The notes beneath the pieces are model-generated. The model worked only from the letters and a program-made list of their open reading frames with translations, ran no database searches and was not told the origin of the DNA. From sequence record OR770614.1: DNA of 64,000 bases. The stretch is one strand, 5' to 3'. This document shows positions 1,100 to 35,900 of this stretch, piece after piece. A program made the translations under genes and the position numbers. Position 1 is the stretch's first letter; each line of letters begins with the position of its first letter.

Positions 1100-1555
1100 T
1101 TATTTAATTAATTTAAATAGATTACGTCCAAATTCTTTATATTTTTTATTTTCAATTAAACTGAAATCAACCAGACTACTATCCACTTGTAACAAGTAAA
1201 TTGGATCATCTTTTTTGTTTTTATTATTTAAAAGAAAACTTCCAAAGTAAATATTTTCTTCTCTAGGTTTTTCTTTTTTAACTTTTAAATCTTGTTCGTT
1301 GAATTCAAACTTGTATATGAAACCCATTAACTGTATAGGACCATTTTTAAATATATGATAGTCAAAGCTATTTTCGAATTTATGATTTTCTTTATTAATT
1401 TGATCCATTAATTCATCTTTAATAACTTCATTATAAAAAGACTCATCAACTTGACTCAATGGTCTTAAATAAGATTCTTCTTGTATTTTAGGTTCTAATA
1501 ATTTAATTTTCTGATCTAAAGTTAATTCTGATGCAATTTTCTTTTCACTTGTCAT
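1100..1555 (-). CDS. hypothetical protein
   Basis: 151-aa ORF with an AAGGAGA RBS. Confidence 0.8.
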   Translation of the reverse strand: MTSEKKIASELTLDQKIKLLEPKIQEESYLRPLSQVDESFYNEVIKDELMDQINKENHKFENSFDYHIFKNGPIQLMGFIYKFEFNEQDLKVKKEKPREENIYFGSFLLNNKNKKDDPIYLLQVDSSLVDFSLIENKKYKEFGRNLFKLIK

Positions 1556-1566
1556 TGTAATTCTCC

Positions 1567-1794
1567 TTATATAAATTTACTATTAATATCTTTAAAAAGT
1601 ATCTTCTTTAATTCTTTTCTATCAACTTCATTATTCTGGTAAATTTTAAAAAGAAATTCATGAAGTTCTTTATTCTCTTGTTCCAGCTCTTCAATTTTAT
1701 CAAGTTTATCCTGACCTCTTATTGCTCTAGAAAGATTATTTAATGCAGTATTTAATTGATTTGAAACTTGAGTAATTTGATTGTTATTAGTCAT
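1567..1794 (-). CDS. small hypothetical protein (paralogue family)
   Basis: 75-aa ORF with an AAGGAGA RBS. Confidence 0.8.
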   Translation of the reverse strand: MTNNNQITQVSNQLNTALNNLSRAIRGQDKLDKIEELEQENKELHEFLFKIYQNNEVDRKELKKILFKDINSKFI

Positions 1795-1807
1795 TGAAAG
1801 ATCTCCT

Positions 1808-3031
1808 TTACTTAACTATAATTAAATTCTTTTTAGCACGAGTAATTGCAGTATATAATGATTTGTATCTATCTTTAGAATAATTTTCATCGAATACAAT
1901 AACGTTATCAAATTCAGATCCTTGAGATTTATGAACAGTTATTCCATAAGCATAATTAAAAGGATTAACTTTCATACTAAAATTACTCATAGTAGTTACA
2001 TAACGTTTTTTAAAGATCTTATTAATTTCATTATCTGTCTTTCTTAATTCAAATAACTCCTGTTGATCTCTAATAGTTCCATTGAAAATTAAATCATCAT
2101 AATATATTCTACTAAATCTTTCATTATCAAAACCTACTGGCTTAAAATCTAATTGTGTTGAAGCAGTAAAACTATTTTTCTTACCAGATCTTGTTATTTC
2201 TCCAATTAAACCATTTGTAAGATATTGATTTATATTTCCTTCAGTAATAACTTTATTCCAGTTATTTTTCAAGCAAATAATTTTTTCTCCTGCTTTAGGA
2301 AAAGGATTTGATTCAATGTCAATTCCTTCAACTTGATTTCTATAGAAGCTATTAAATTGATTAACTGTTTTATTATAACTCATAAGAACTTGATCTGCAT
2401 TTTTATACATATCTATTGTTAATTCATTTGAATTTATTACTTGTAAATTATCTCCATAAGAACCATATTCAATATCTTCTCCTTTACGAACTTCATTAGC
2501 CATTTTAAGAATAGGGTTATCTAATGCCTGTCTAACAGGTTCATCTAAGAATATGTCTGGATTTTCTATTAATGAATTAGTACCAAAAACTGGTGTCAAT
2601 TGAGATTTGTCTCCACAAACTAATATAGGTATTTCAAATTGTTTAATCTCTTCAATCATTTTATCAGGAACCATAGATATTTCATCAATGATTATTAATT
2701 TAATTTCAGGATCAAATTCTTCTTTAGTTTTTAAAACAAATCTAACTTCACCTGTTTTTTCATCTACGAAAGGATTATAAATAGTTCTATGAATGGTAGT
2801 AGCATTTATACCTCTCTTAACTAATACTCCTGCTGCCATTCCTGTATATGCTATAAACGATACTTGAGATTCATGTAATCCTAAAGTATCTATTATTTTA
2901 GTCATCAAATAACTTTTACCACTTCCAGCAATTCCTGCTAAAACAAAAGGTCTTGATGTATCATTATTCCACCAGTGCTTAGCCTTCATTAATCCTTCTT
3001 CTTGTTTTTTATTTAATCCCATGAAATTCAT
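1808..3031 (-). CDS. SF1B DNA helicase, Dda/RecD-like
   Basis: Walker A GIAGSGKS, Walker B IIIDEISM, GDKSQL, motif V TVHKSQGSEF, motif VI YTAITRAK. Confidence 0.9.
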   Translation of the reverse strand: MNFMGLNKKQEEGLMKAKHWWNNDTSRPFVLAGIAGSGKSYLMTKIIDTLGLHESQVSFIAYTGMAAGVLVKRGINATTIHRTIYNPFVDEKTGEVRFVLKTKEEFDPEIKLIIIDEISMVPDKMIEEIKQFEIPILVCGDKSQLTPVFGTNSLIENPDIFLDEPVRQALDNPILKMANEVRKGEDIEYGSYGDNLQVINSNELTIDMYKNADQVLMSYNKTVNQFNSFYRNQVEGIDIESNPFPKAGEKIICLKNNWNKVITEGNINQYLTNGLIGEITRSGKKNSFTASTQLDFKPVGFDNERFSRIYYDDLIFNGTIRDQQELFELRKTDNEINKIFKKRYVTTMSNFSMKVNPFNYAYGITVHKSQGSEFDNVIVFDENYSKDRYKSLYTAITRAKKNLIIVK

Positions 3032-3395
3032 ACACCTCGATTATTTTTGTAAATCATTTACTTTGTAATTTAATAATTATTGGTTAATTCAGTTTAATAA
3101 TTTTTTCTTTATAAAAAATTTGAAATCCACCACAATATATTATTTATATATTTGTAAATAATAGATTTTTTATTAATTAATAAATATATTATAAAAAATA
3201 ATATTAATTAAAAATGTTATTAAAAATTAAGTAATTAAAATTAAAGAAAAATACTTATAAATAAACTTAATTTGGATCATAGAAAAAATTAAAAATTACA
3301 ACTAATATTTTAAATATATATTATTTTAATGAGATTAGTATAAATACTAATTTCAAATATATAAAAATATGTAAAATATAAGGAGAGAATATGGT

Positions 3396-4295
3396 ATGGC
3401 AATTACAAGAAGAAAAGTAACTAATGAAACTAAGGATTTAAGTGTATTAGAATCAGCAGAATTAAAAGTAAGTGAAGAACAAGGTTATAAAGGTGACGTA
3501 TTAACTTTTGAAATTGAAACAATTCCAGAAAAATATGATAGAAAGAATTTAGTATTAATTCCAGAAGATGATAATGTAATCAAAATTAATTACAATAAGA
3601 ATGAAATTAATATTGCTTCTGATGAATTAAAAGATGTAATTATTAAATTAAAGGATATTCCAACAGATACAGAATATGATAATGTAACTATTACAGCTTC
3701 AGGAATTAATCCTGATAAAGAAAAAGAAATTAAAGAAGAAAAAGTAGAAGAAGTTAAGAATCCAGTTAAAAAGAAATCTAGTACAAAAACTAAAACAAGT
3801 AAAAAGGATGATAATAAAGTGGAAAAAATTAAAGTTAATCGAGTTAAAAAAGACGTTAAGAAAACTACTAAAAAGAAATACAGTGATAAATCATACACTA
3901 AAGATGAATTATTAAATGATTTATTAATGAATCTTGTAGATGAATCAGGAAATGAAGCATACAGTAAAAAAGAATTAAAAGATATTGTAACATTAGCAGA
4001 TTCATTACGTACATCAGCTTTAAAAGAGGGTAAAACAATTTCAATTAATAACATCAACTTTACACGTAAATTACAAAAAGCTCGTATTCATGCACCTAAA
4101 TTAGATACAGTTAAATCACCTTCATATGTAACTCCACATATAGTTATGCAAGCTAAAGTTGAATCTGATGATAAAGAAGTATTAAAAGGTGAGAAATTAT
4201 CTGCTGATAAATTTAGAACAAAAGATGGTGAAGAAATCGATTTAAATAAAGTTAATGAAGAGTATGAAAAAGAGTTTAAAAATAAATTTCAATAA
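3396..4295 (+). CDS. DNA-binding protein with a C-terminal HU/IHF-like (TF1-like) domain and a Lys-rich linker
   Basis: The segment YTKDELLNDL...SKKELKDIV...ALKEGKTISINNINFTRKLQKARIHAP follows the HU helix-helix/beta-arm pattern; AAGGAG RBS. Confidence 0.6.
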   Translation: MAITRRKVTNETKDLSVLESAELKVSEEQGYKGDVLTFEIETIPEKYDRKNLVLIPEDDNVIKINYNKNEINIASDELKDVIIKLKDIPTDTEYDNVTITASGINPDKEKEIKEEKVEEVKNPVKKKSSTKTKTSKKDDNKVEKIKVNRVKKDVKKTTKKKYSDKSYTKDELLNDLLMNLVDESGNEAYSKKELKDIVTLADSLRTSALKEGKTISINNINFTRKLQKARIHAPKLDTVKSPSYVTPHIVMQAKVESDDKEVLKGEKLSADKFRTKDGEEIDLNKVNEEYEKEFKNKFQ

Positions 4296-4307
4296 TAAAT
4301 AGATTGG

Positions 4308-4970
4308 ATGATATTAATGAAGCATTTTTACAATAAGAAAAGAAGTATTAATATTAATATAGAGAATCTATATTTAAATCATATTGATGTAATTAAACGT
4401 TATGATTTTGGTGACGAAGAATTACATCAAATGATTGATAGATTTTTACCTCAAATAATTGAAGAATCTTATGAGTTTAATATTGAAATGTATAATTTAT
4501 TAAAGACTGATAATATTAAGGAACGCTATGAATTAACTTCATTAGCTTCTCTTGAATTATTAGATATAATTCTTTATTTTGTTTCTATAAATTCTACTTT
4601 GATTGAGAAGTATAATTTAGAATACAAATATGTAATAGAATTGAATGATTTAAATTTCAGTAAAGATTTTGTATTAAATACAGGTGAAAAAGTTAGTGAT
4701 GATAAATTCTATCAAACAATAATTGATTCTGTAAGTAAAACAGTGGTTAATAATGGTGGTCATATAAGAAGATTAACACCTAATAGAAAATATCATCAAG
4801 AAAATAAAAAAGTCAGTAAAAAAGAAATGAATCATATTATTGGTTCTATTTTCTTTATTAACCATAAAACAATAGATTTCTTATTAACTATGCTATTTGA
4901 AAAATTATCTTTAGAAAAAGATGTAGATTTAGTATTAGATAAAATTCAAGAAGTAGTTAAAAATAAATAA
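4308..4970 (+). CDS. hypothetical protein
   Basis: 220-aa ORF directly downstream of the HU-like gene and followed by a terminator. Confidence 0.8.
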   Translation: MILMKHFYNKKRSININIENLYLNHIDVIKRYDFGDEELHQMIDRFLPQIIEESYEFNIEMYNLLKTDNIKERYELTSLASLELLDIILYFVSINSTLIEKYNLEYKYVIELNDLNFSKDFVLNTGEKVSDDKFYQTIIDSVSKTVVNNGGHIRRLTPNRKYHQENKKVSKKEMNHIIGSIFFINHKTIDFLLTMLFEKLSLEKDVDLVLDKIQEVVKNK

Positions 4971-4974
4971 TTAT

Positions 4975-5022
4975 TTTCCCTAACACTTATATTCCTTAAA
5001 TGGAGTATTTGTGTTAGGGAAA
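4975..5022 (+). terminator. intrinsic terminator hairpin
   Basis: TTTCCCTAACAC / GTGTTAGGGAAA inverted repeat followed by a T-tract. Confidence 0.8.
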
Positions 5023-5069
5023 TTTTTGTTTTTTTTTGTAAATTATTATCAAATCATATAACTTGATGG

Positions 5070-5081
5070 AACATATTTGTA
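5070..5081 (+). promoter_or_regulatory. putative late promoter (AACA-N6-TA)
   Basis: AACATATTTGTA just upstream of the 5099 ORF; matches my recollection of the AR9 non-virion RNAP late consensus. Confidence 0.55.
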
Positions 5082-5098
5082 TTAAGAAAATATGAGCG

Positions 5099-8000
5099 GT
5101 GGTGAAATTAAAAGTAATGGATAATAATAAAAAGAATATAAAGAGGCTAGAAAAAAATAATAAATCAGAGATAATTAAAAATGCTTCTAAAAATACTAGT
5201 CGTATTCTTTTCAATGCATTTATTAAATCAAATCCAGCATTAGATAGTGTTATTGGTTCTGATGGATTAAATTTAATGAATAAAGAAGAAAGAAGAATTA
5301 AAAACGTTTCTGAAATTAAATCTTCCACTAAGAATTTAATAAAAAGTATTAAATCTAGTTCAGAAGAAAATGATATATTTTCAGAAGAAAGTGAAGAAAT
5401 ATCAAATTCTAAACCTGAGTATGAAACAGTTACTGAAATAATTGATAATGATGATGGTACAAAATCTGAAATAATAAATGTTTCAGATAAAAAGAAATCT
5501 AGTCTAGTAAATTCCCCTTTAATTGCTTTTAATAATCTCGCTACGATTAACCAAAAAGGTTTTACAGGAACTAATATAGCTTTAAGAAATTTAGCGATAT
5601 CAAATGAGGCTACAAGTACTTTAATGAATTCAGCTGTATCGAATTTAGCATCAATACAGAGTTCTATATATCAAAATACTTTACTTGAAGAAAATACTAA
5701 AAGAGGAAAACAGAGTAAACTATTTGAAATAATTAATGGTAATATAAGTTTATTAAAATATTTAGACGATAAGACAAATATTGAAAATAATTCAATGATA
5801 AGTATGTTAGGTGGTTCTGAAGGACTTAAGAATATATTAATGGGATTTGCAAAAAATCCTATTGAATTAGCATTAACTACAGGTGCTCAAATGGGCATGA
5901 AGAAATTGATGTATGGAAGTACTTCAGGATACGATCCAGATGATGTTGAAAATAAAGGTATATTTAGTAGACTTAATAGAAAATTTGATCCTAATAATTT
6001 AGGTTCTTTATTAGTAAGTGAACTGACTGATGATGAAGGAAGGTTATCAAATACCTTAGATAAACTTAAAGGTAATGATAATAAATATATTTCTAATTTA
6101 GGTGAAGCACTTAATAAAAGAATCGGAAATTTAAAAGATAACGTTTTAAGTGATGGAACAATATCAACTAAGAATAAAAGAGATAAAAATACTCCAGTTC
6201 AATTTGATAGACAAAGTCATACTTCTATTAATAAAGCTATACCAGATCTTTTATCTAGATTACAAGGTAATCTAATTGCTAGAAGAGAAGGAAAATCTAA
6301 TGGTTTAGTCAATAATAGTGAATTAGGTAGTATATATAATTATTCTGAAGGAACTTGGGATAGTAGAGAGAATACTAGAAAAAATATAAATGATAAATTA
6401 AAAGAAAAATCATTATTTAATTTTAAAGATACTAAATTAGGAAAAGATTTATCTGATAATGGTATTGAAGATGAAGAAATTAAGGATATCTTACTCTCTT
6501 TAAGTAAAATTAATAAACCAGTAAAAAATAAAGATGAATTATCTAAGCATACTAAAGATATAAATTATTCAGATATTATTGAAAATATTTTCAATAATGA
6601 TATATCTAAATTTAATATTGATCTTTTTAATATTAAGAAATCAATAGGCTCTGAGTATAACAAGATTGGTAAAGATGATTCAACATTAATGTCATTTACA
6701 GATATTAAAGGATTAAAAAGAAGAAATAATGAAACTCAATCAAGTTCTGCTAGAGTAAATAAAATTAATGAAGTTAAAGATTATTCTGATATCGAATGGA
6801 AGAATGATGATCTTGATGAACTTAAAAAATTATTCTTAGAAATAGAAAGTAAATTAGACGATATTAATCCAGAAAATATAAGCAATAATAAAGATTATGT
6901 AAATGATAAAATAGGAAAAATTAATAGTATTATAGATTCGTCTAGTAAGTTTAATTTACCTAGTTATTTATCTAATGAAAAAACAAAATCAGTTCAAGAC
7001 AAATTAGGTAAACTATCAAGTTCTGTTAATAAATTTAATGATATGCGTAAAGATCCTTCATCTATTTTAAGAGAAAACACTAATAATAATGGTAATAATG
7101 AAGATCATAATTCTGGTATCATAGATAATAACTATACAGATAATCATCCTTTAATGAATTTAATAAAGAATATTAAAGGACCTCAGAGTAATAATAAAGT
7201 TGATTTAAATAAAGAACCAACTAAAAGTATTGATGATTTATCTAGAGAAGAAAAGCAATCTAAAGCTAGAAAATATCTTGAAAATTTAATTAGCACTGCT
7301 TATCCTAAGCAAAGTAAAACTATGATAAACGACATGAATCAATCTGATGATAATAAAAAATTAGATGAAATGAAAAAAGGTTTATCAACTGCAAATGCTG
7401 CTGAGACTGGTGAAGACGTTATATCAAAATTATCAGGATCTAGTAAAACAAAGGTTGCTGAAGATTTAAGAGGAACTCTTAAATTTGGCTCTGGTGGAGC
7501 AGCTGAAAAAGAAACAGGTACTAAGAAATTAATGAACTCAATGTTAGATTTTAGTAAACCAGGAACAATTGCTTTTGCAGGACTATCTGCTACTGTTTTG
7601 GCTAAATTAATGAACGGTAAAAAGAAAAAAGATCAAGAAAAAGGTCTAATGGGTAGTGTTGGAACAGGATTGGGATTCTTAGGTAAAGCTGGATTAATGT
7701 TAGGTGGAGGTGCTATAGCAGCAAAATTCTTACCTAAGATACTAAAGAAATTCTTACCTAAAGGTGCAATGAAAATGCTTGATGTAGTTAGAGGACTACC
7801 TGGTAAAGTTAAAGGTGCTATTGGTAAAGTTGTAGATATAGGAAAAAACTTTTATGGGAAAACTAAAAATTTAATAAAAGGTATTGGAAATTTAGGTAAA
7901 AATATATTTGGAAAAACTGTTAAATTTGGTAAAGGTGCATTCAATAAAACTGTTAAATTTGGTAAAGGTGTATTCAATACAGGTGCATCTGTAGTAAAAT

Positions 8001-11000
8001 GGGGTGCTAAAAAGTTACCTAAAGTAAAATCATTTGCAGTTAAGGGATTAACTAAAACTGGTAAATTTTTAGGTAAAGGTTTTAAAAAAGCTAGTTCTAT
8101 AGGTAAAGGTATATTTAGCTCTATAAAAAATGGGGGTAAAAAAACTTTTGGATTCTTAGGTAAAGCTAAAAATAAACTATTTAGCAAAGGTGGTATGAAA
8201 GCTGCTGGAAAATTTGCTTTAAAAGCTGGTCTAAAAACAGCATTACCTTTTATACCTATTGTTGGTCCTATTATAGGTGCGGCAATGTGGGCACCAGATA
8301 TTATCAAAACTATAAAACATCCTATTGAATCTCTTAAACATCCAATTAAAACTTTAGGAAGCTTTTTCGGATTGTCTAAACACCCAGGAGATAATCTTGA
8401 GGCTAGAGAAAAAGAAGAAAAAGAAAATGAAGATGAAACAGGTTTAGGAAGATTAATATTATCTACTTCTAAAATGATGTTTAGATCATCTCCTTTATTC
8501 CCAATTTCAAAAGTTGGTGGAGATATGTTTAAAACAATAACTGATAATAAAATGAAGTCAGGTCCTAAAGCTGAAGAAGAAATACAAGAAAATATGTTCT
8601 ATGATACTCCTTTAGGTAGTTTATATCAAATTGCAAAAGGTGGAATAGATTTCTCTACTAAAGGTGGAGGAGAAATTGGTGATTGGTTTGCACGTTTCTT
8701 AGTTAAAATGGAAGAAATGGTAGTTGCCATGTCTAAAATGAAAAACTCTAGTTCAGGTGGAGATTCATCATCTTCATCAGGTAGCAGTAGTGGACAATTA
8801 CAAGGTGATGAAATTGAAATAGATAAAAATGCACCTTCTATTACATCACAATCTGTATTGAATAAAATACCTGATAATGCTGCAGGTGCTTGGATTAAGA
8901 AACACCAATTCTGGCAACCATTTGGTAATTATCAAGGACTATCATTTAACGGAAGTTCAAAACACTGGGGTATAGATATTGGTATGCCTACAGGAACAGA
9001 TATATTAGCTATTGTACCTGGTACAGTAAGTAATATAATTAAAGACGTTGGTGGAGGTAATATCGTTGAGGTCAAAAACGGTAGTATCTACACTTGGTAT
9101 ATGCATAATAGTAAAATAACTGCTAAAAAAGGTGATAAAGTAGGAGTAGGTCAAAAAATTGCCGTCTCTGGTAATACAGGGGCTCAAACTACTGCACCAC
9201 ATATGCACTTCCAGGTCATGAAAGGAAGACCTTCAAATGAAACTGCAATTGATCCAGCACCTTATGTATTTGCTAAAGTAAAAGGTAAAGGTTCAGATGA
9301 TGATGACGATAAGAGTAGTTCTAAAGGTGGAAGTAGTAAAAAAGGTGAAAAAGATAAAGGTGGAGGTCATTCACTAGTAGGTGATATGAATTCTGTATCT
9401 ATGCAAAGACAACTTAAGAAGAAAAGCATCCAAGATATGCAGAACCGAAGAAAAGAAATTGCTCAACAAAAGAGAGAGCAAGATAAAATTAATACACAAA
9501 TAAATAGAATCAATAAGCAAGATGATTATAAAGTTAAAGAAAAAGCTAAAAAAGTAAATAAAGTATTTAATGCAATTAAAGAAAGTAAAGAGAAAAAACA
9601 AACTGGAATATTAAGATCATCAAATCAATTTAATAAAATTTTGATTATAGGTGATGAAATAACTAAAGATGCTTCAAATGATCTTAGAATTAAAATTAAA
9701 GGTGCTAAAATAGAAGCTTCTGTAGGGAAACAATATTCTGGTGGATCTGAATCTGGTAGAAGAATATTACAGAATAATATTGATGAGTATAACAGAACAG
9801 GTGTAGCAATAGTCATCCAATTAGGTTTAAACGGAGGATTATCTACAGGAGAAATATCAGAAATACAGAATATGTATGATAAAGCTAATGTATATTTCGT
9901 TAATACTTATTTCAATAGTAATAAAAACGGTACTAGTTTAGATTTAACTGATTTGATGAATGCAGTCAATGAATCAATTAATGCTAGTGCAGCTAATATA
10001 ATTGACTGGTTTAGTAAAGCTAATTCTGTTTTAGTTAAAGAAGATGGTTATATGCCAACTAATAAAGGTAGAATGATATTAGTAGATTTAATAAAAATGT
10101 ATGTAAATCCTTATATTGGTGGTGGAGGTTCTTCTGATGATAAAAAAGCAGAAGAAAAAATTGATAAAGAAGTAGAAAAAGAAAAATCTAAAGCTGATAA
10201 AAAAGATAATAAAGATGAAGATGAAAAAGGATCTGAATCTAAAGTTTCTAAAGATGAAGATGGAGAATCTTCTGATAGTGATAGTTCTGATTCTTCTTCA
10301 GGTTCCGGAGCCGGAGAATACAGTTTCAAAAATGGTACTTGGTATGGTTCTATTACCGGTAGAGATGATAGAAGAATGGATGAAGAAGAACAAGAAGAGC
10401 TTAATGATCGTTTAATGAAACGTTATGCTAAAATCTATGGAATTGACTATGAAGAAGCTAAGAAAATAGATAAAGAACAACAAGAAGAGCTTAAAGCTAA
10501 AGCAGGTAAAGAAGCTACTGAGTCTGGATCTTCAAGTGGATCAAGTTCATCTAAAGATGGAGACGATAAAGATTCTGGATCTTCTGCAAGTTCTTCTAAG
10601 GATAAAGCTAAAGAAAATATTGAAAAAGCAGGTAGTCAAATTTCTAAATTAGGTAATGGTTTCCAATTACCAACATTAGAGAATAGTGGTTTTTCTAATA
10701 GTAATAAATCAACACAAAATAATCAAGGTAATACAAGTAATAATACAACAAATAATAATTATAATCAAGGTCAAGGAAGTACTGTTAATAATACCGATGT
10801 AAAACAAGAATTTGTAAAAGGTAAAAATAAAACTACAAATCATTATAATAAAATTGTAAATAATTATAAAAATTCAACTGTAACTAATGGTAATACAGAT
10901 TATATATATGATTATGAGCAATATTGGTATTCAGATGACCTCGTTAAAATGTTGTCAAATATAGATAGAAATACATTAGCTTCTACTAAAGAATTAGATA

Positions 11001-11023
11001 GACTTTTAGAAGAATTAAAATAA
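5099..11023 (+). CDS. tail-associated (tape-measure-like) cell-wall hydrolase with an M23 peptidase and a degenerate OatA-like SGNH domain
   Basis: M23 motifs HWGID, YMH and HMHF (~8963-9260); SGNH-like IIGDE / QLGLNG / DGYM (~9635-10100); 11-residue G/K-rich amphipathic repeats (GKNIFGKTVKF GKGAFNKTVKF). Confidence 0.8.
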   Translation: MVKLKVMDNNKKNIKRLEKNNKSEIIKNASKNTSRILFNAFIKSNPALDSVIGSDGLNLMNKEERRIKNVSEIKSSTKNLIKSIKSSSEENDIFSEESEEISNSKPEYETVTEIIDNDDGTKSEIINVSDKKKSSLVNSPLIAFNNLATINQKGFTGTNIALRNLAISNEATSTLMNSAVSNLASIQSSIYQNTLLEENTKRGKQSKLFEIINGNISLLKYLDDKTNIENNSMISMLGGSEGLKNILMGFAKNPIELALTTGAQMGMKKLMYGSTSGYDPDDVENKGIFSRLNRKFDPNNLGSLLVSELTDDEGRLSNTLDKLKGNDNKYISNLGEALNKRIGNLKDNVLSDGTISTKNKRDKNTPVQFDRQSHTSINKAIPDLLSRLQGNLIARREGKSNGLVNNSELGSIYNYSEGTWDSRENTRKNINDKLKEKSLFNFKDTKLGKDLSDNGIEDEEIKDILLSLSKINKPVKNKDELSKHTKDINYSDIIENIFNNDISKFNIDLFNIKKSIGSEYNKIGKDDSTLMSFTDIKGLKRRNNETQSSSARVNKINEVKDYSDIEWKNDDLDELKKLFLEIESKLDDINPENISNNKDYVNDKIGKINSIIDSSSKFNLPSYLSNEKTKSVQDKLGKLSSSVNKFNDMRKDPSSILRENTNNNGNNEDHNSGIIDNNYTDNHPLMNLIKNIKGPQSNNKVDLNKEPTKSIDDLSREEKQSKARKYLENLISTAYPKQSKTMINDMNQSDDNKKLDEMKKGLSTANAAETGEDVISKLSGSSKTKVAEDLRGTLKFGSGGAAEKETGTKKLMNSMLDFSKPGTIAFAGLSATVLAKLMNGKKKKDQEKGLMGSVGTGLGFLGKAGLMLGGGAIAAKFLPKILKKFLPKGAMKMLDVVRGLPGKVKGAIGKVVDIGKNFYGKTKNLIKGIGNLGKNIFGKTVKFGKGAFNKTVKFGKGVFNTGASVVKWGAKKLPKVKSFAVKGLTKTGKFLGKGFKKASSIGKGIFSSIKNGGKKTFGFLGKAKNKLFSKGGMKAAGKFALKAGLKTALPFIPIVGPIIGAAMWAPDIIKTIKHPIESLKHPIKTLGSFFGLSKHPGDNLEAREKEEKENEDETGLGRLILSTSKMMFRSSPLFPISKVGGDMFKTITDNKMKSGPKAEEEIQENMFYDTPLGSLYQIAKGGIDFSTKGGGEIGDWFARFLVKMEEMVVAMSKMKNSSSGGDSSSSSGSSSGQLQGDEIEIDKNAPSITSQSVLNKIPDNAAGAWIKKHQFWQPFGNYQGLSFNGSSKHWGIDIGMPTGTDILAIVPGTVSNIIKDVGGGNIVEVKNGSIYTWYMHNSKITAKKGDKVGVGQKIAVSGNTGAQTTAPHMHFQVMKGRPSNETAIDPAPYVFAKVKGKGSDDDDDKSSSKGGSSKKGEKDKGGGHSLVGDMNSVSMQRQLKKKSIQDMQNRRKEIAQQKREQDKINTQINRINKQDDYKVKEKAKKVNKVFNAIKESKEKKQTGILRSSNQFNKILIIGDEITKDASNDLRIKIKGAKIEASVGKQYSGGSESGRRILQNNIDEYNRTGVAIVIQLGLNGGLSTGEISEIQNMYDKANVYFVNTYFNSNKNGTSLDLTDLMNAVNESINASAANIIDWFSKANSVLVKEDGYMPTNKGRMILVDLIKMYVNPYIGGGGSSDDKKAEEKIDKEVEKEKSKADKKDNKDEDEKGSESKVSKDEDGESSDSDSSDSSSGSGAGEYSFKNGTWYGSITGRDDRRMDEEEQEELNDRLMKRYAKIYGIDYEEAKKIDKEQQEELKAKAGKEATESGSSSGSSSSKDGDDKDSGSSASSSKDKAKENIEKAGSQISKLGNGFQLPTLENSGFSNSNKSTQNNQGNTSNNTTNNNYNQGQGSTVNNTDVKQEFVKGKNKTTNHYNKIVNNYKNSTVTNGNTDYIYDYEQYWYSDDLVKMLSNIDRNTLASTKELDRLLEELK

Positions 11024-11044: not shown

Positions 11045-14000
11045 TTGGCTAAAGATAAATTTAATAATAAGAAATTAGAAAGAGAGTTCAATAGGAACTC
11101 CTCTTCTAATTCTTCTAGAAAATACATTGATAATGAATTCAAAAAGAATTTGAATAACATGAAATCAAACAATATGAAAAAACTTATTGATAACAATAAT
11201 CCTTTAAAAGCTATCAAAGAAGTTAAAGATAATAGAAAAGAACAATTTAAGAAGTTAACTGAAACTGGGAAAGATTTATCTAAAGAAGCTCTTAAAAGTA
11301 CTAAAAGAACTTTAAAAACTGGTGAAACGATCATAGATAAAGGAGCTTTAAATAAATCATCCAATTTAGATGGCGGAACAATGGATATGGGCGATGATTT
11401 TGATTTCAGTAGCTTTGATGATTTTGATATGAGTGATGAAAATTCAGATAATGATGAAATAGGAGATTTTTCTTTCGATGATTTTGATGAAGAAGAAAGT
11501 AATAAATCTGAAGTCATTTCATCAACAACAGTAATTAATGATAATTCATCTTCAGCTAAATCTTCTGCTCTTTTAACTTCTTCTATATCTAATTTATCTC
11601 AAATTAATGCCACAGGTTTTAATAATTTAATGGAAACTCTTCATTACATGAGAGAAACTAATGATAATGTTAGAGAGAATTTATTTGAAGGATTAACAGG
11701 TTTAATCAAAACTAGTAATGATATTAGAAATAATACATCTGTAAAAAATATAAGTGAAATTAAAAATAGTAATTCTTTAGAAGATTTGTTCTTATCTAAT
11801 ATAACTCTTTCTAATATACTAAGTGGTAGTAAAGAAGATAGTTTTAAAGATAAAGCTAAAGACTTTGCTAAAAAACAAGGTATTGAATTAGTTAAAGATA
11901 TTATTGAGAGTAGGACCAAAGGCATACAAGGTGGACTTTTAGACAGTGCTAAAGGTAAAGCTTTTGATATAATAAACAGTGATAAAATTAGTGAAAAGCT
12001 AACAAATATGTCAACGGTATTTACTAAAGATGAAAATAAAGAAGATAAGAAGAAAACTAATCGTGATTTCATAGATAAACAGAAAAGCAAACTTATAGAT
12101 AAATTATTTAATAATATCGATGGTGGAATTTCAACAGCAAATAAAAAGAATAAAAATGAAAGAGTAGCTTTTGATGTTGAAACACATAGTACTATTAATA
12201 CAGTTATTCCTGGTTATTTATCTAAAATAGTTGGTTTAACTTCTGAAGATGGTCAAGAAATTCATTATGACTATGATTCAGGATCTTTTAAAACATCTAA
12301 AACTATTAATGATGAAATTAAAAAATCTATAGATAAAACTATTGAAAATTCTGAATTCTTCAAAAGAGTTGAAAGTAAAGCTAAAGATAAAAATATAGAC
12401 TCTAAAGATTATAAATCATTAGTAAAAAATATTATTAGTGAAAATGTTAATAGTTCTAAAGATAGTGATAAAGTTAAAACTAAGTCATCTAATGTAAATA
12501 GTCTTTTAGAAGAGCTATTTGAAGATAAAGAAGTAAAAACTAGTTTAACTAAAGCTAGAATGCAATTGAATCAAAAATCTAAATCAATTAGAAAAAATCT
12601 TGGTGGAAGTACTATAAATGCAGTTAATGATAAAGGTCAAAAACCTAAGTCATATGCTTCTAAAGGTAACAATGAATTTTCTGACATTAATTTTAATATT
12701 ATCAATAGCGATATAAGTGAAATTAAAAATATTGTATCTAGAATAAATGATAAACTAGATGTAAGAAAAAATAATCAACAATCTTCACAAAATAATAATA
12801 TTGTATCTGGAGATAGTCAAAAACAAGATAGTAAATTTAATGAAATTAAAGAAAAATTGGATGACATTAAAGATACTAAGTCTTCTAATTCTTCTAATAA
12901 TGGAAATAATTTAAATAATAGAGATGAACAAAAATCTACTTTGATTCCAGATAATAATGAAGCTCATGCTTCTGAAGTAAATAAACAACAAGAAGAAAAA
13001 GAAGATAATCCATTAAAAGATGAAATTAAAGATAAAATAGAAGAAAAAGCTAAAGATAAAATTAAAGATATTGATAAAGATAAACTTAAAAGAAAAGTAT
13101 TAGATAGTAAAATAGCTAATACTAAAATTGGTAAAAAAGCTATAGGTGCTGGTGGATCAGTTGCCGGTAAAGTTGCTGCTAGTGGAGCTTTGTTTTCTGG
13201 TGCTGGAAGAGAATTACGTTCTAAACTAAGAAATAAAGCTAAAGGTAAATTTGGTGCAAGTAAAGCTGGAAGTAAATTAATGAGATCTAAAGCCGGTAAA
13301 GGTATAGTTAAAGCTGGTTTGAAAGTAGGTTCAAGAGTAGGATTGGCTGCAACTGGTGTAGGGTTACCTTTATCTATATTATTGTCTGCTCCTGAAATAA
13401 TGAGTACTATAGCACATCCGATTGAATCTCTTAAACATCCAATTAAAACTTTAGGAAGTTTTATAGGTTTTAATGATCACCCTGCAAAACAGAAAAAAGA
13501 ACAAGAAAAATTAGATTCCGAACAACCTAATGGCGAAAATGCTAAATTTGGTGTTGATCCTTTAGTTGATTCTAAATTAACTGGTGATAAAGATAGTTCT
13601 TCATTAATTGGAGGTTTTATCAAAGATAATCCTCTATTAGCTCAAGTTCCGTTAATGGGATTAGCTGGAGTTGGGCTTTATAAAGGAATTGTAAAACCTG
13701 CTTTTGGTCTAGGTATGAATATGGTACAGAAAACTACTGGAATGGCTAAAGGATTTGGTGATTCTGCTGATAGCATGATGGAAGAAAAATCTAACGGTTT
13801 TGGTGGTTTAATTAAAAAAGCTGTAGGTGGAGCTTCAATGTTATTAATGGCACCTTTAGCTATGGCTGGAAAAGGAATTAGTACTATGGTTGGAGCTACT
13901 TCTAATCTTATTCAAGTTGGATTAAGTTTAACTAAAAATTTAACAGGATTCATTTATGACAAATTCCTTTCTCATGAAGAAGAAATGTCTGAGCAAAGTC

Positions 14001-16759
14001 GTGAAATGGTGGAAGCTAGTAAAGAAGAATTAGGTTCTTATCAAGAAGGTATTGAAGATCATGCATCTGAAAGAGCTAAGAAAGAAATGGCTGAAATGCA
14101 AGGAATGTCTGATAAAGCTAGTAAGGATGCTAAAAAACAAGTAGAAGATTCAACTAATAAAACTAAAGATAATATCGAGAAAGATGTTAATGGAGTAATG
14201 AAAAATTCTCCTTTATCTATCATGGGTAAAATTAGTGAAAAAATGCATAAAATGATGCCTAATAATTTAATGAGTAAACTTAAAAAAGCTCCTAAAAAAT
14301 TGGCTGAAACTATGTTAAGATTGTCTCCTTTCTATTCTTTATTAAGTAAGAAGAAAAAGAAAAAATCTAAAAAAGATATAACTGATCCTGATGGTGAAGT
14401 AGTAAACAAAATTGGTGATTGGTTTGATAAACTTGGCGGAATGATGAATGATATTATGGCAGGATTCATGGCCGGTTCATCAGGAAGTTCTTCTTCAGAA
14501 GGATCATCTGAAGGAGGAGCAGAAAGTGTTGACGGTAAAGATGTTGCATCTAAAGTATGGAATTTCTTTGCTGAAAAAGGGTTAGAAGATCATCAGATAG
14601 CAGGTATATTAGGTAACTTTGAACGTGAATCTAAAATGGATCCTGGTGCTGAACAAAACTCTGGTTGGGTCGGAGGTAAAGGACTAGCTCAATGGGATGA
14701 CCGTAAAGATAAACTTAAAGCATTTGCTGAAAAGAAAGGTAAGAAATGGTCTGACCTTGATGCTCAATTAGACTTCATGTGGTATGAACTTCAAGGATCT
14801 GAATCTGCTGCTTGGTCTGCTATTAAGAAAGCTAAGAATGTTGATGAAGCAACAGTTGTATGGGAGAATTTGTATGAACGTGCAGGAGTTAAAGTTATTC
14901 CTGAAAGACAATCAAACGCTAAAAAATGGTTAGATAAACTAGGGGGTTCATCTAAGAAATCCACTAAAGCTAAAGGTGGAGGATCTAGCACTGTTTATAG
15001 TGATACGAACGTTAATCAATTTGCAAATATGGTATCATCTACATCTAATAAAAATAAAAAAGTTGGAAAAACTGGTTTAGTTTTAGAAAAACCTACTATT
15101 ACTGGTGGAGTTTATGGTAAAGGTGGAGGATCCGGTGGATCTGAAAAAGATAAAATTAAACAAGCAGTACAATGGGCAATAGCTCAAGATGGTGCAAAAT
15201 ACTCTCAGTCAAATAGACAAGGTAAAAATTCATTTGACTGTTCTAGTTTAATTGCTCGTTCATTCAAAAAAGCTGGTTTAGAAATGGATATCAACGCTAC
15301 CACTTTTACTTTTAGAGATGGTGGTACTAAATTTAGAAAAATAAGTAAAGGTACTAAGAAAAAAATTGGTGATATTACTTTATGTGATAACGATAACCAT
15401 GTTACTATGTATATAGGTGGAGGAAAACAAGTTGAATCATATTATGGTCATGGTGTTGCTGTAACTCCTGCAAATAAATACCAAAAAATGGGATTACAAA
15501 TTGGTATTACAATGAGATATGGCGGCGGTGGTCCTGATGATACAGGTAAACCTCTAGATGGTAGTGATAAAATAGATGGAAGCGATAATGAAGGAGGAGA
15601 CTCTAACGGTTCTTCTGCTGGAGCTTCTGAATATAGTTTCAAAAATGGTACTTGGTACGGTTCTATTACTGGTAGAGATGATAACCGTATGGATGAAGAA
15701 GAACAAGAAGCTTTAAATGATAGATTAATGAAACGTTATGCTAGAATTTATGGAATTGACTATGAAGAAGCTAAGAAAATAGATGAAGAACAACAGGCTG
15801 AACTTAAAGCTAAAGCAGGTAAGGAAGCTACTGAATCTGGAGCTTCAAGTGGATCAAGTTCATCATCTGACGGTTCAGAAGGATCATCTGGTAAAGATGG
15901 TTCTGATGGAAAAGATGGTAAAGACGGTTCATCATCTTCATATAGTTCTGGAGCTGATGGTGACAATCAATCATCTTCAGGAAGTCAAGGAAATGTTAAT
16001 AATAACCAAAATAATTCTAGTATAATTAATAATGGAGGAAACAATAGCTCTACAGTTATTAATAATAATTATAATAATGGTAGACCTACAACTAATAATA
16101 ATTCCATTACAAATCAAACTATACAAGGCAACAATAATACAGTAAGAAATATCTATAATATTACTAATAATTATAATAATTCTAAAGTAAATTATGAAAA
16201 TAAAGGACCTATGAAAGTAGATCCACAAAAACGTATGGATTTAGATAATATAATTAAACATACAAGTAATATTGATAAAAATACTGCCAAAATGTTAGAA
16301 CAACTTAAAGATATGTCCTTTAAAGGTAAAAATATTAATAAAGATGGAAATACAACAAATATTTCTAATACTATTATTAATAATAAAGGCGATTTAGTAG
16401 ATTCTAAAGGTAATGTAATTATTAAAGATATTCAAAAAGAGCTTGAAAAAATTATTAAAGAAAATCCTAATATTATTAATAATGGTCAAAATGGTTCTAA
16501 TGGATCTAATGGTTCTAATGGAAATAGTAACAATAATAATGGAAATGATAATCAATCAAATCATAATAATCCTAATGATCCAAACAATTCTAATAATCCA
16601 AATAATCCTAATGATCCAAATAATCCTTATACTCCTGATGGTTCAAGTCAAGATCCATCTACAGGTAATCAGGATTTACAAGAAGCAATTAGAGATTCTT
16701 ATGGAGATAGATTTGTTATTGATGTTAGACCAGCTATACCTGTTTTCTCAGGAAAATAA
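11045..16759 (+). CDS. tail-associated (tape-measure-like) cell-wall hydrolase with phage tail lysozyme and NlpC/P60 domains; paralogue of the 5099 ORF
   Basis: Lysozyme-like IAGILGNFERES...GLAQW (~14551-14945); NlpC/P60 FDCSSL...GD...HVTMYIG (~15150-15520); shared motifs with the upstream gene; TTG start. Confidence 0.8.
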   Translation: MAKDKFNNKKLEREFNRNSSSNSSRKYIDNEFKKNLNNMKSNNMKKLIDNNNPLKAIKEVKDNRKEQFKKLTETGKDLSKEALKSTKRTLKTGETIIDKGALNKSSNLDGGTMDMGDDFDFSSFDDFDMSDENSDNDEIGDFSFDDFDEEESNKSEVISSTTVINDNSSSAKSSALLTSSISNLSQINATGFNNLMETLHYMRETNDNVRENLFEGLTGLIKTSNDIRNNTSVKNISEIKNSNSLEDLFLSNITLSNILSGSKEDSFKDKAKDFAKKQGIELVKDIIESRTKGIQGGLLDSAKGKAFDIINSDKISEKLTNMSTVFTKDENKEDKKKTNRDFIDKQKSKLIDKLFNNIDGGISTANKKNKNERVAFDVETHSTINTVIPGYLSKIVGLTSEDGQEIHYDYDSGSFKTSKTINDEIKKSIDKTIENSEFFKRVESKAKDKNIDSKDYKSLVKNIISENVNSSKDSDKVKTKSSNVNSLLEELFEDKEVKTSLTKARMQLNQKSKSIRKNLGGSTINAVNDKGQKPKSYASKGNNEFSDINFNIINSDISEIKNIVSRINDKLDVRKNNQQSSQNNNIVSGDSQKQDSKFNEIKEKLDDIKDTKSSNSSNNGNNLNNRDEQKSTLIPDNNEAHASEVNKQQEEKEDNPLKDEIKDKIEEKAKDKIKDIDKDKLKRKVLDSKIANTKIGKKAIGAGGSVAGKVAASGALFSGAGRELRSKLRNKAKGKFGASKAGSKLMRSKAGKGIVKAGLKVGSRVGLAATGVGLPLSILLSAPEIMSTIAHPIESLKHPIKTLGSFIGFNDHPAKQKKEQEKLDSEQPNGENAKFGVDPLVDSKLTGDKDSSSLIGGFIKDNPLLAQVPLMGLAGVGLYKGIVKPAFGLGMNMVQKTTGMAKGFGDSADSMMEEKSNGFGGLIKKAVGGASMLLMAPLAMAGKGISTMVGATSNLIQVGLSLTKNLTGFIYDKFLSHEEEMSEQSREMVEASKEELGSYQEGIEDHASERAKKEMAEMQGMSDKASKDAKKQVEDSTNKTKDNIEKDVNGVMKNSPLSIMGKISEKMHKMMPNNLMSKLKKAPKKLAETMLRLSPFYSLLSKKKKKKSKKDITDPDGEVVNKIGDWFDKLGGMMNDIMAGFMAGSSGSSSSEGSSEGGAESVDGKDVASKVWNFFAEKGLEDHQIAGILGNFERESKMDPGAEQNSGWVGGKGLAQWDDRKDKLKAFAEKKGKKWSDLDAQLDFMWYELQGSESAAWSAIKKAKNVDEATVVWENLYERAGVKVIPERQSNAKKWLDKLGGSSKKSTKAKGGGSSTVYSDTNVNQFANMVSSTSNKNKKVGKTGLVLEKPTITGGVYGKGGGSGGSEKDKIKQAVQWAIAQDGAKYSQSNRQGKNSFDCSSLIARSFKKAGLEMDINATTFTFRDGGTKFRKISKGTKKKIGDITLCDNDNHVTMYIGGGKQVESYYGHGVAVTPANKYQKMGLQIGITMRYGGGGPDDTGKPLDGSDKIDGSDNEGGDSNGSSAGASEYSFKNGTWYGSITGRDDNRMDEEEQEALNDRLMKRYARIYGIDYEEAKKIDEEQQAELKAKAGKEATESGASSGSSSSSDGSEGSSGKDGSDGKDGKDGSSSSYSSGADGDNQSSSGSQGNVNNNQNNSSIINNGGNNSSTVINNNYNNGRPTTNNNSITNQTIQGNNNTVRNIYNITNNYNNSKVNYENKGPMKVDPQKRMDLDNIIKHTSNIDKNTAKMLEQLKDMSFKGKNINKDGNTTNISNTIINNKGDLVDSKGNVIIKDIQKELEKIIKENPNIINNGQNGSNGSNGSNGNSNNNNGNDNQSNHNNPNDPNNSNNPNNPNDPNNPYTPDGSSQDPSTGNQDLQEAIRDSYGDRFVIDVRPAIPVFSGK

Positions 16760-32957: not shown

Positions 32958-35900
32958 TTATTTGAATAAATCCATAATACGTTTATTATTGTTATCTATT
33001 GGTTTTTGTTGTTGACCAAATATAGAATTACTCATATCATTTCCTTCAATAACACTATTGATACGTTTAATTGAAGCAATATCTTTTCTTCTAGCTTCCT
33101 GTTCTTTTTTCATTCCTTCTGCATTTTCACTGTTAGGTGAGAGTTTAGAACCATATTTAACTTTTACAAATTTATTAATATCCTTTTCATAATAATATGC
33201 ATATAAACAGAATAAATAAGACATCATTAAGTCGTCATGGCCACCTGGTGGATGGTCAATACGTCCTTTAATCATTTGTAACGATTTAATTTCTTGGAAA
33301 AGTGGTTTATTATTAATTAAATGTGGTTTTTCTTCAACAAGCATAGATAATATTTCATTTAACATTATATCACGAGATTTTTTAGTTGTATCAATACCAT
33401 ATCTACGAGTTTCTTTTTTAACTTTTTCAGTTTTACTATATCTAGACATTTCATTAAATAAACTTTTATTTTCTACTTGCTTTTCAGCTACACGAGTTTT
33501 AAGCGTATAGAATAAATTAGATTCTAAACCATCATAAGTTATCATATGATCAATTACTGTTAAACCTGCATAGTTACGTTCAGGTATTAATATAGCGTTA
33601 GGTATATAGAAACCAACCAATTCTTTAATTAATTTTCTGAATGTAGGTCCATTAATTACATTATTTTTAAAAGTCATTACTGGTTCCAAAGTAGCTGGAT
33701 CCACTACAGTAAACGCTGTATTATCTCGTCCTAAACCACCAGACATATCAATACCAATAAGCCAATTTTTCTCTGTAATATTATCCATATATTTAATCAT
33801 ATTTACATAATAAGTTCTACCATCAATATTAAATTCAAGAGTATTATATATTTCTTTATTAGCATACATAGATATTTCAGTCATTTGTTCTTCAGAGAAT
33901 AATGAATCATCAGAACTATAAGCCCATTCCAATAATATCTCACGTTTAACTGCTTCTAAAGAACCAATTTGTCTTTTTTGTTTTTCTAACCAATCTTCAT
34001 CTTTACCTAATTCTTTATATGAATATTCTATATACATGAATTCATTATTTGAATTATCTTCCATGTATTTTTCTAATTTAGAATTTCCTTCTTCTTCACT
34101 ATCAATAAAATAATCATATATTTTTTCATTCCATTGAGCTGCTTCATTCATTTGTTGAAAGAAAAATTGCCCTTGAGATGTGTCGAGAGTTGAAGGGGTT
34201 GTGGTGATAAGGAGTCCATAGGGAGAACCGTTTTCTTTTGCAATTCTAGAAGCTGTACTTATTGCTGGTCATTTATGTTAGCTGCATGGATTATCATGCA
34301 GATCAGACTATATCATAATCTTTTTAAGATTTAATAAATTTAGTCGTTGAACATTATTTAATGATGCTGATTGGTTTTTAAACTTTTCAGCAGTTAATAT
34401 TATTCATCATCTATATTTCTATAAAGATGGAGCCTTTTTACTCATTGCTTCAAACATTACTTGATTATGTGGTATAAACGCCCACTCATCAAGCCAAACC
34501 ATAGGTCATTTACGTTAAACTGCATGGATTATCATGCAGATCAGACTATATCATAATTTTAATAATTTTTTCATAGGGATAATTAATTCTTCATTTATTC
34601 TATTCTGATAAGGGAGACGTATCATATTTATTCCTTTACTTCTTATAAATTTATCTTTTTCATTATCTAATTTTTTTATATCTTCAAGAGTTCTTGTGCG
34701 TTTATTTCTTTTATCATTAATAAAAGTTCCATAACCTTTTATATGTCCTTTTCCATCTACTTCAACTACAGTATTTATTTTTTTAAAATAAAAATCAAAT
34801 CTAAAACTAGATCCTTCAAAAGTAACTTCATTCTCATATTCTATATTATTCTCTTGAAGAAATTCAATAATGGCAATTTCTCCTATACTTTTAGAGCATA
34901 CACTACATCTTTTTCTTTTAAGTATATCATCTGGTCTTGTTTTAAATTTGTGTCCACAATCATTACTCTTCAAATAGATATAATCTTTGCTTCTAGTATA
35001 TTCAGTTAACACATTAAATTTATTATATCCAAATATCATATCTAATTCACCTTGAAACTCTTCTGTTGTCTTTTTAGATAATTCTTGACTATCTAATATG
35101 ATATAATTTTCATCATTTATACATCTATTACAGTTTACTGAATTATACTTCTTTCTTTTATCCATTAGAGTAGAAGGCTTTGCAAAATATCTTATATTTC
35201 CACATTTTCCACAACGGAATCTACACTTTTTATTCATTCCATTGAATCCTTCAATATAAGTATAATTAAATCCGAACTTATCTTTTAATTCTATTAAAAA
35301 AGTTTCTTTACCTTTAGAATTCTTGGGTTTTTCTGAATATCTACAATCTTTTCTATTACAGAATTTTCTCTTTAATCTTAATTTTTCAGTAGGTAAGAAA
35401 AAATCTCTATCACATATATTACAATGACATTTAATTGGTTCTTTAGAATTTTTATACTCTCCCAGTATTTCAAATTTATCTCCATTAATATCTTTTATTT
35501 CTTTAAAAGTTTTATTTCTCTGTTCTATGAATTTTTCTTTACTTTTAACACCTTTAGGCATTTTATCCCTCCGTTATCGTACTGATAAAAGAATGTTAAC
35601 AGTAAAAATTATTAAAATTGATTTTATTTAGTCGTTGAACACTAATTAAAGTGATGCTGATTAACTTCATTATTAGTCTTCCAGCAATTAAAAATCTTTA
35701 TGCACTGCATCTACATACGGTGCTACCTCTTCCTGCTTTGTTTGCCGTAATACATTGTATGATATTCATACACACTAGACTATATCTTATAATATTAATT
35801 ATCTCTATATTTAGTCGTTGAACAATCAATTTGATTGATGCTGATTGGTTTAGTATCTTTTTCAGCAGTTAATAGAGTTTAATGAGAGCACGTATTTTAC

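Follow-up and report, generated by a model that had tools for sequence, protein, structure and literature searches.

A degenerate OatA-type SGNH domain retained in a giant tail protein of Staphylococcus jumbo phage PB50

Why would a phage keep, inside a giant tail protein, a cell-wall enzyme domain whose catalytic residues have been replaced? This question is raised by the window analyzed here, a stretch of 64,000 nucleotides that corresponds, coordinate for coordinate and with 100% identity, to the first 64 kb of the 273-kb genome of Staphylococcus jumbo phage vB_StaM_PB50 (OR770614.1; hereafter PB50). PB50 belongs to a group of AR9/PBS1-like S. aureus jumbo phages, together with S6, PALS_2, DC4, MarsHill, Madawaska, Machias, AH12, LY01, and SA1. 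In a 1973-amino-acid (aa) protein of PB50, a preliminary description, made from the letters of the sequence alone, had noticed a segment resembling the SGNH domain of the staphylococcal peptidoglycan O-acetyltransferase OatA, with the catalytic Ser and His replaced, and had suggested that it binds O-acetylated peptidoglycan or wall polymers, or serves as a decoy of host OatA. The peptides quoted there are all present, in frame +2 (9599-10132) inside the open reading frame (ORF) 5099/5102..11023. We number residues throughout according to the coding sequence (CDS) 5102..11023.

A phmmer search of the segment against all sequences in the PDB matched its residues 15-165 to the SGNH domain at the C terminus of S. 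aureus OatA (OatA-C; 6WN9/6VJP, E=2e-9), and phmmer against 1.84 billion cluster representatives returned 45 relatives of the domain. A profile made from these relatives scores E=1e-50 against 6WN9 and 4e-23 against S. pneumoniae OatA-C (5UG1). Searched with a hidden Markov model (HMM) built without PB50, the 273-kb genome yields a single match, which is this ORF, at E=1e-33. An AlphaFold2 (AF2) model of the domain, computed from the alignment of library relatives, has a mean predicted local distance difference test score (pLDDT) of 90.4 and a predicted template modeling score (pTM) of 0.87. When this model was ranked against the PDB with Foldseek, four chains of S. aureus OatA-C (SaOatA-C) came out on top (E=1e-10, TM 0.70/0.79). 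Other SGNH esterases came next (sialate and xylan acetyl-esterases, PAF-AH). The resemblance noticed by eye therefore goes far beyond chance: the segment at 9635-10096 has the fold of an SGNH protein and is genuinely homologous to the SGNH domain of S. aureus OatA. OatA-C (S. aureus 6VJP/6WN9; S. pneumoniae 5UFY/5UG1) is its best match in both sequence and structure, sharing with it the five-strand alpha/beta/alpha fold and the Block I/II/III/V layout. Pfam and PHROGs scans of the segment gave no SGNH match, and a homologue search restricted to the region returned only its own cluster; the family is visible only through phmmer against the PDB, the library-wide phmmer search, and the profile derived from it.

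In all alignments, Block I reads GDE in PB50 in place of GDS, so that Glu1519 occupies the position of the catalytic Ser, and Block V reads DGYM in place of DG(V/I)H, so that Met1651 occupies that of the catalytic His. The oxyanion Asn1577 of Block III, which is unchanged across all jumbo phages, is retained, as are Gly1542 of Block II, likewise an oxyanion-hole residue, and Asp1648 of Block V. Gly1542 lies in a VGKQ motif aligned to VGRQ of SaOatA; SA1 has Lys and S6 has Ser at that position. Residue alignments and codons thus bear out the two replacements and the retained Asn as originally read. In OatA-C, substitutions of Ser, His, and Asn abolish activity, and S438A/H571A-type mutants, for example, are inactive (PMC5697884; PMC9487903). 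Because these residues are essential in OatA-C and the 178-aa segment of PB50 (9599-10132) contains no His and no Cys, canonical Ser-His-Asp acyl-enzyme catalysis is excluded. Judged from its sequence, the PB50 SGNH domain is a pseudoenzyme, homologous to active enzymes and lacking residues essential to their chemistry.

Exactly four of the columns conserved in the family are altered in all three dead lineages (PB50 with Machias and AH12, LY01, and SA1), and all four belong to the catalytic center: Ser is replaced by E/D, the Thr before Asn by L/M/I, the Val before His by Y/I, and His by M/T. Four positions after the Ser (Ser+4), where relatives fused to peptidoglycan hydrolases mostly have Gly, all three lineages carry Asp. 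Elsewhere the scaffold is unaltered, with the GD, LG-N-G, W, and DG motifs present. In the same protein, the HxxxD/HxH motifs of the M23 peptidase are intact, and so are the lysozyme and NlpC/P60 motifs of a paralogous tail lysin, which indicates that the decay is specific to the SGNH domain. In S6, the Ser and His codons are TCC and CAT, each three nucleotide changes away from GAA and ATG of PB50, so a sequencing slip does not account for the difference.

We took a census of live and dead versions of the domain across 10 jumbo staphylococcal phages in GenBank. Five of the 10 (S6, DC4, PALS_2, Madawaska, and MarsHill) have GDS and His; PB50, Machias, AH12, and SA1 have GDE...M, and LY01 has GDD...T. 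PB50, Machias, and AH12, which share the same dead state, are three independent isolates. Among the library relatives counted, Ser is kept in 44/44 and His in 42/44, the exceptions being P0015 (Val) and P0020 (Asn). The preliminary description had called for a check of GDS/DxxH in relatives; with the motifs intact in the S6 group and Ser intact in every non-jumbo relative sampled, the PB50 state is a derived loss. In a maximum-likelihood (ML) tree, the jumbo-phage domains are monophyletic (support 98/85), and PB50/Machias/AH12, LY01, and SA1 form one dead clade (support 100/100, stem 0.69) whose outgroups are live, which places a single loss on its stem. Block V carries an insertion of two residues in the S6 group (DGLGVH) and in SA1 (DGSGYM) and none in PB50, LY01, or the outgroups. 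Neither IMG/VR nor the JGI metagenomes yielded additional relatives when searched with the jumbo-phage alignment, and GTDB genomes scanned with the P0002 domain, from one of the closest live relatives, gave none either.

The two library relatives without His are both fused to a lysozyme. P0015, on a very long branch, keeps Ser and has His replaced by Val and Asn by Asp; P0020 has His replaced by Asn. These are independent partial degenerations of the domain; its retention after loss of catalysis may be recurrent.

The live or dead status of the SGNH domain does not correlate with the lysozyme of the paralogue, whose catalytic motifs are intact in both groups; LY01, for example, combines a dead SGNH domain with an S6-like lysozyme. 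The lysozyme domains differ in other ways. In PB50 and AH12, Phage_lysozyme2 lacks a stretch of ~10 residues after the GNFExES motif (~14640-14700, tail lysin aa ~1200-1215) that is present in LY01, SA1, S6, and Madawaska, and the PB50/AH12 domain is ~50% identical to theirs. The LY01 orthologue of the 1973-aa protein (1417-7362 of its locus) is itself a mosaic: its N-terminal 420 aa are S6-like (synonymous rate, dS, 0.25; nonsynonymous rate, dN, 0.03), and aa ~1200-1440, including the M23 domain, are PB50-like with 87-88% identity. This mosaic implies intragenic recombination in which the M23-SGNH cassette moved as a unit.

Despite its lost catalytic residues, the domain is still under purifying selection. 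Over the 154 codons of the SGNH domain, PB50 and AH12 differ by nine synonymous and no nonsynonymous changes; the p value of this pattern is 6e-7 under neutrality and 0.006 when the rest of the gene serves as the reference. Deeper pairs have proportions of nonsynonymous differences (pN) of 0.27-0.40 vs proportions of synonymous differences (pS) of 0.54-0.61, with pN below pS in all of them; for PB50 and LY01 the values are 0.27 and 0.54. The estimates used are those of the Nei-Gojobori method (NG86) and of the unsaturated PB50-AH12 pair; an IQ-TREE GY+F3X4 omega of ~0.02 was discarded, as its branches reached 5-9 substitutions per codon with synonymous saturation. Three of the four active-site loops are strongly conserved, live and dead jumbo phages share an unvarying NGGL(S/T)TG stretch, and all dead lineages have an acidic residue at the nucleophile position (E, D, E). 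The Block II loop varies within the dead clade.

The origin of the domain bears on what it used to do. Capture of host oatA is ruled out: the PB50 domain is only ~26% identical to S. aureus OatA and branches apart from the clade of SGNH domains fused to the AT3 membrane domain. It falls inside a clade of hydrolase-fused SGNH domains (support 96/94). Phage_lysozyme2 is the fusion partner in 11/45 relatives (e.g. P0011, P0016, P0045), and other relatives are fused to SLT, 3D, transglycosylase, M23, NlpC/P60, or CHAP domains. The order M23 then SGNH, as in PB50, recurs in four clusters (P0007, P0009, P0029, P0039); P0007, from a phage-like contig, and P0009 carry M23 and NlpC/P60 together.

Within this clade, the jumbo-phage domains are sister to live domains of giant proteins from conjugative elements (support 99/91). 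Outside phages, the nearest relatives (40% and 34% identity) are live N-terminal SGNH domains of 1500-1660-aa proteins. Their genes adjoin an AAA ATPase, a TraG/VirD4-type coupling protein, and a MobL relaxase, at a GC content of 30-37%, and the coupling protein and relaxase together indicate a conjugative element. Megablast of this context against PLSDB returned no match. The 1518-1662-aa relatives on metagenomic contigs (those carrying P0050/P0056) have no other Pfam domain, and P0002, outside its SGNH domain, resembles giant proteins of staphylococcal plasmids. These giants are possibly wall-breaching proteins of a low-GC Gram-positive conjugative element.

The 6-O-acetyl group on N-acetylmuramic acid (MurNAc) blocks muramidases. 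The hydrolase-fused relatives have GDSxxxG in Block I in 20/24 cases and DGVH in Block V, as compared with GDEITKD and DGYM in PB50, and Asp at Ser+4 occurs in 13/21 members of the OatA clade. In SaOatA, this Asp suppresses hydrolysis, and replacing it raises esterase activity ~3.8-fold (PMC9487903). Fusion to hydrolases, the GDSxxxG motif, and the absence of an AT3 partner or of an acetyl donor outside the cell together point to an esterase rather than a transferase function. We infer that the ancestral domain was an extracellular O-acetyl-peptidoglycan esterase serving glycan-cleaving enzymes. The HMM found no second OatA-C-like domain in the 273-kb PB50 genome (other SGNH subfamilies were not searched genome-wide), which suggests that the esterase function was lost, not relocated.

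Our preferred explanation, which we hold to be probable, is that the PB50 domain is the dead descendant of such an esterase, kept as a non-catalytic module that is probably wall-binding or regulatory. The ancestor would have removed 6-O-acetyl groups from MurNAc, opening the glycan to muramidases; Ser and His were then lost once, on the stem of the clade of PB50/Machias/AH12, LY01, and SA1. The PB50 domain would now sit, non-catalytic, within an M23-SGNH cassette that the tail tip releases on penetration, where it may bind the glycan strand or wall and so hold or orient M23 and the lysozyme/NlpC-P60 of the paralogue, or may instead regulate these neighboring hydrolases. By analogy with the degenerate LytM domain of PrgK (see below), wall or glycan binding or regulation of neighboring hydrolases would be the most likely role. 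The retained fold, the conservation of three of the four loops, and the acidic residue kept at the nucleophile position argue for such a retained non-catalytic role. That the domain binds O-acetylated peptidoglycan, as the preliminary description proposed, is plausible. O-acetyl groups are known to matter to staphylococcal phages (PMC4876445; PMC7845607).

Several points weigh against this explanation. The esterase function of the live relatives is itself something that we infer, and the Asp-His insertion (DGLGVH) may mean that even the 'live' domain of the S6 group is impaired. The orthologue of the 1973-aa protein was not found in the virion proteome of DC4, which is shallow (15 proteins). 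Over the long term, the NG86 ratio of nonsynonymous to synonymous rates (dN/dS) of the SGNH domain is 0.36-0.46. The protein as a whole averages 0.34, so that the domain is under no stronger constraint than the average, and the adjacent M23 domain, at 0.10, is held about 4 times more tightly; this level of constraint also fits a merely structural role.

That structural role is the main rival, less probable in our view than a wall-binding or regulatory module: the esterase became dispensable, and the domain is kept only for the folding, assembly, or dimensions of the giant protein, with no ligand. Besides the long-term constraint just described, the variable Block II loop of the dead clade fits this account, as does the fact that phages of both the S6 type and the PB50 type infect S. 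aureus, so that the activity is evidently not essential. A remnant of this kind does not readily explain, however, why the replacements affected the active center only and left three of the four active-site loops strongly conserved, why NGGL(S/T)TG is invariant in live and dead phages alike, or why none of the nine recent changes is nonsynonymous. The acidic residue kept at the nucleophile position and the Asp gained at +4 in three lineages likewise look like remodeling rather than drift.

Remodeling could also represent a gain of function, a reading that we consider doubtful. Here the domain would permanently imitate OatA in its acetyl-enzyme state, the one in which the MurNAc acceptor is bound, and would so be a lectin for the glycan strand. 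Glu is nearly isosteric with O-acetyl-serine and would act together with the oxyanion Asn and the Asp at Ser+4, a residue that in SaOatA shields the acetyl-enzyme from water. In a variant of this proposal, the acidic cluster would bind cationic groups of the wall. Either way, the domain might fix the tail protein in the staphylococcal wall, or guide it there, after ejection. If correct, this would be the first case of a lectin derived from an SGNH domain and would give a phage a new means of reading the acetylation state of peptidoglycan.

We regard it as improbable that the domain is an enzyme with a different chemistry, in which a carboxylate cluster of Glu1519, Asp1523, and Asp1648 serves as nucleophile, general base, or metal site for some other wall substituent. 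The conserved acidic residue at the nucleophile position, with Asp1518, Asp1523, and Asp1648 nearby, would suit such a cluster, and SaOatA-C is able to bind Zn in its active site (PDB 6WN9 title). Set against this are the absence of His and Cys from the domain and the state of LY01, which has the shorter Asp in place of Glu and Thr in place of Met, such that the geometry is not fixed. A review of SGNH enzymes that we searched describes no Glu nucleophile, and to our knowledge there is no precedent for one in this fold.

The decoy idea of the preliminary description fares worse, and we consider it highly improbable. In this scenario, the domain competes with or poisons host OatA so that new peptidoglycan stays sensitive to lysozyme; the fold common to both and the OatA-like Asp at Ser+4 would fit. 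The domain is not derived from host OatA, though, given its ~26% identity and separate clade, and OatA-C is covalently tethered to its own AT3 domain, leaving no free partner to titrate. The mechanism is also weak for a few tail-internal copies acting locally, for seconds, at one point of a wall that is already acetylated, as a decoy could not remove existing O-acetyl groups. Gene decay or an error of sequencing or alignment can be set aside as scarcely credible, given a frame uninterrupted over 1973 codons, the same residues in three independently sequenced phages with equivalents in LY01 and SA1, replaced codons that differ from S6 at three bases, evident purifying selection, and a register on which HMMER, MAFFT, and Foldseek agree.

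The domain is part of a cell-wall-degrading tail protein encoded beside a paralogue that bears a lysozyme (Table 1). M23 is the only Pfam match in the 1973-aa protein, with no AT3 (PF01757) domain among the matches, and its intact motifs indicate that this peptidase is apparently active. The two giant proteins, encoded at 5102-11023 and 11045-16759, are paralogues: they share a central block (aa 998-1111 vs 718-824, 42% identity) and a C-terminal block (aa 1722-1973 vs 1511-1755, 50% identity), between which they carry different cassettes, M23 with the dead SGNH domain in one and Phage_lysozyme2 with NlpC/P60 in the other. A lysozyme in the sister protein, as earlier claimed, is indeed present (PF18013, E=2.8e-40). 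The 1973-aa gene, annotated as a tape measure protein (TMP), lies close to genes for the tail sheath and virion proteins, and from this context and the domain architecture the protein is probably virion-associated. Korn et al. classed both giants as potential TMPs; the PHROG tape-measure matches to the 1973-aa protein arise solely via its enzymatic domains.

Table 1. Coordinates in the PB50 window of the giant tail proteins and of the SGNH domain with its active-site blocks.
Feature	Position	Strand	Basis or remark
Giant tail protein gene, 1973 aa, annotated 'tape measure protein' (WPH64084.1)	5102..11023	+	Record annotation; ORF 5099/5102..11023
Peptidase M23 domain	8960..9256	+	PF01551 E=1.4e-22; HxxxD and HxH read from translation
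OatA-C-type SGNH domain, aa 1512-1665	9635..10096	+	phmmer, family profile, AF2/Foldseek, leave-PB50-out HMM
Glu1519 (GAA), Block I nucleophile position	9656..9658	+	Alignments; Ser in 44/44 relatives counted, TCC in S6, Asp in LY01
Asp1523 at Ser+4	9668..9670	+	Gly in 20/24 hydrolase-fused relatives and S6; Asp in most OatA-type domains
Block III Leu1576-Asn1577	9827..9832	+	Oxyanion Asn kept (9830-9832); Leu where family has Thr (91%)
Block V Asp1648-Gly-Tyr-Met1651	10043..10054	+	Asp kept (10043-10045); Met (ATG, 10052-10054) where family has His (95%)
C-terminal module, 50% identity to neighboring giant protein	10265..11020	+	aa 1722-1973 vs aa 1511-1755 of the neighbor
Paralogous 'tail lysin', 1904 aa	11045..16759	+	Phage_lysozyme2 ~14543-14941; NlpC/P60 ~15224-15475

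Low-complexity linkers flank the SGNH domain. The upstream one (9260-9600) is rich in Lys, Gln, and Glu, ~120 aa long, and probably helical; the downstream one (10100-10270) begins with a Gly4 hinge, followed by a stretch rich in Asp, Glu, Lys, and Ser and by Ser/Asp repeats. Such linkers suggest that the SGNH domain is a tethered, independent module.

Other features of the records deserve mention. In the record annotation, the genes for the alpha subunit of ribonucleotide reductase and for the large terminase are both divided into two CDSs (27278-30193 and 32958-36522, minus strand), with an HNH or homing endonuclease gene between the halves; many genes for RNA polymerase, gyrase, and DNA polymerase in other parts of the PB50 genome are split likewise. 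The record OR844999.1, 'Staphylococcus phage SA 1306 Kay' (UNVERIFIED), contains a full-length S. aureus-type oatA (AT3 and SGNH) and thus gives the impression of a piece of host chromosome submitted under a phage name; the matching Listeria records are probably host DNA as well. We read the full S. aureus-type OatA sequence used for comparison from OR844999.1.

How does the PB50 domain compare with known systems? Like OatA-C, it has the oxyanion Asn, the Block V Asp, the Block II Gly, and, as in SaOatA, the Asp at Ser+4. Unlike OatA, it has no AT3 membrane domain and neither the Ser nor the His, follows M23 in a phage tail protein, and lies outside the AT3-fused clade. With the hydrolase-fused clade, including the conjugative giants P0002 and P0003, it shares clade membership, the M23-then-SGNH order, and muramidase-type partners. 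GDSxxxG and DGVH are retained in that clade, whose members are presumably esterases, whereas PB50 has GDExxxD and DGYM.

The function that we ascribe to the ancestor has a counterpart in Ape1 of Neisseria and Campylobacter, whose established role is to take 6-O-acetyl groups off MurNAc, a step required before the glycan can be cleaved (10.1101/2021.09.23.461501; PMC6174289). The enzymes that Ape1 serves in this way are lytic transglycosylases. Ape1 is likewise a member of the SGNH superfamily; it differs from PB50 in belonging to another subfamily with a CBM35 insert and in being an active, periplasmic housekeeping enzyme of Gram-negative bacteria.

Degenerate LytM domains, which also occur in EnvC, NlpD, and DipM, resemble the PB50 SGNH domain as wall-enzyme folds without catalytic residues beside active hydrolases, where they have been kept for peptidoglycan binding or for regulation. 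The LytM domain of PrgK, from the type IV secretion system (T4SS) of pCF10, is degenerate, binds peptidoglycan, and damps an adjacent phage-type muramidase in an envelope-crossing machine (PMC11323569). The fold of these domains is unrelated to SGNH: they are M23 domains that have lost their metal site, whereas in PB50 the M23 domain is intact and the SGNH domain is dead.

Among phage proteins, Tal (gp59) of S. aureus phage 80alpha has a C-terminal SGNH/GDSL domain of unestablished activity at its wall-penetrating tail tip (PMC7048315). In contrast to the PB50 domain, it matches generic lipase/esterase SGNH structures and not OatA-C, lies on a baseplate hub protein, and is not reported to be degenerate. 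The papers on these jumbo phages that we searched mention M23, PF18013, and NlpC/P60, and never an SGNH or OatA-like domain. Our literature search found phage SGNH esterases that act on capsules and O-antigens, and 80alpha Tal, and no OatA-type domain in phage tail proteins; nor did it find an SGNH pseudoenzyme or a characterized member of the hydrolase-fused OatA-C-like clade. The PB50 domain would thus add a new fold to those known among degenerate wall-enzyme domains.

The relatives of this domain make up a previously unannotated family, in which OatA-C-like SGNH domains are joined to the enzymes with which phages and conjugative elements breach the wall. Should its live members be true O-acetyl-peptidoglycan esterases, they would also have practical interest, as adjuncts that sensitize staphylococcal walls to lysozyme-type lysins. 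The S6 and PB50 groups provide a natural live/dead pair in closely related jumbo phages that infect the same species, which makes it possible to test both whether phages de-O-acetylate the wall for their muramidases and why a phage would keep a dead esterase.

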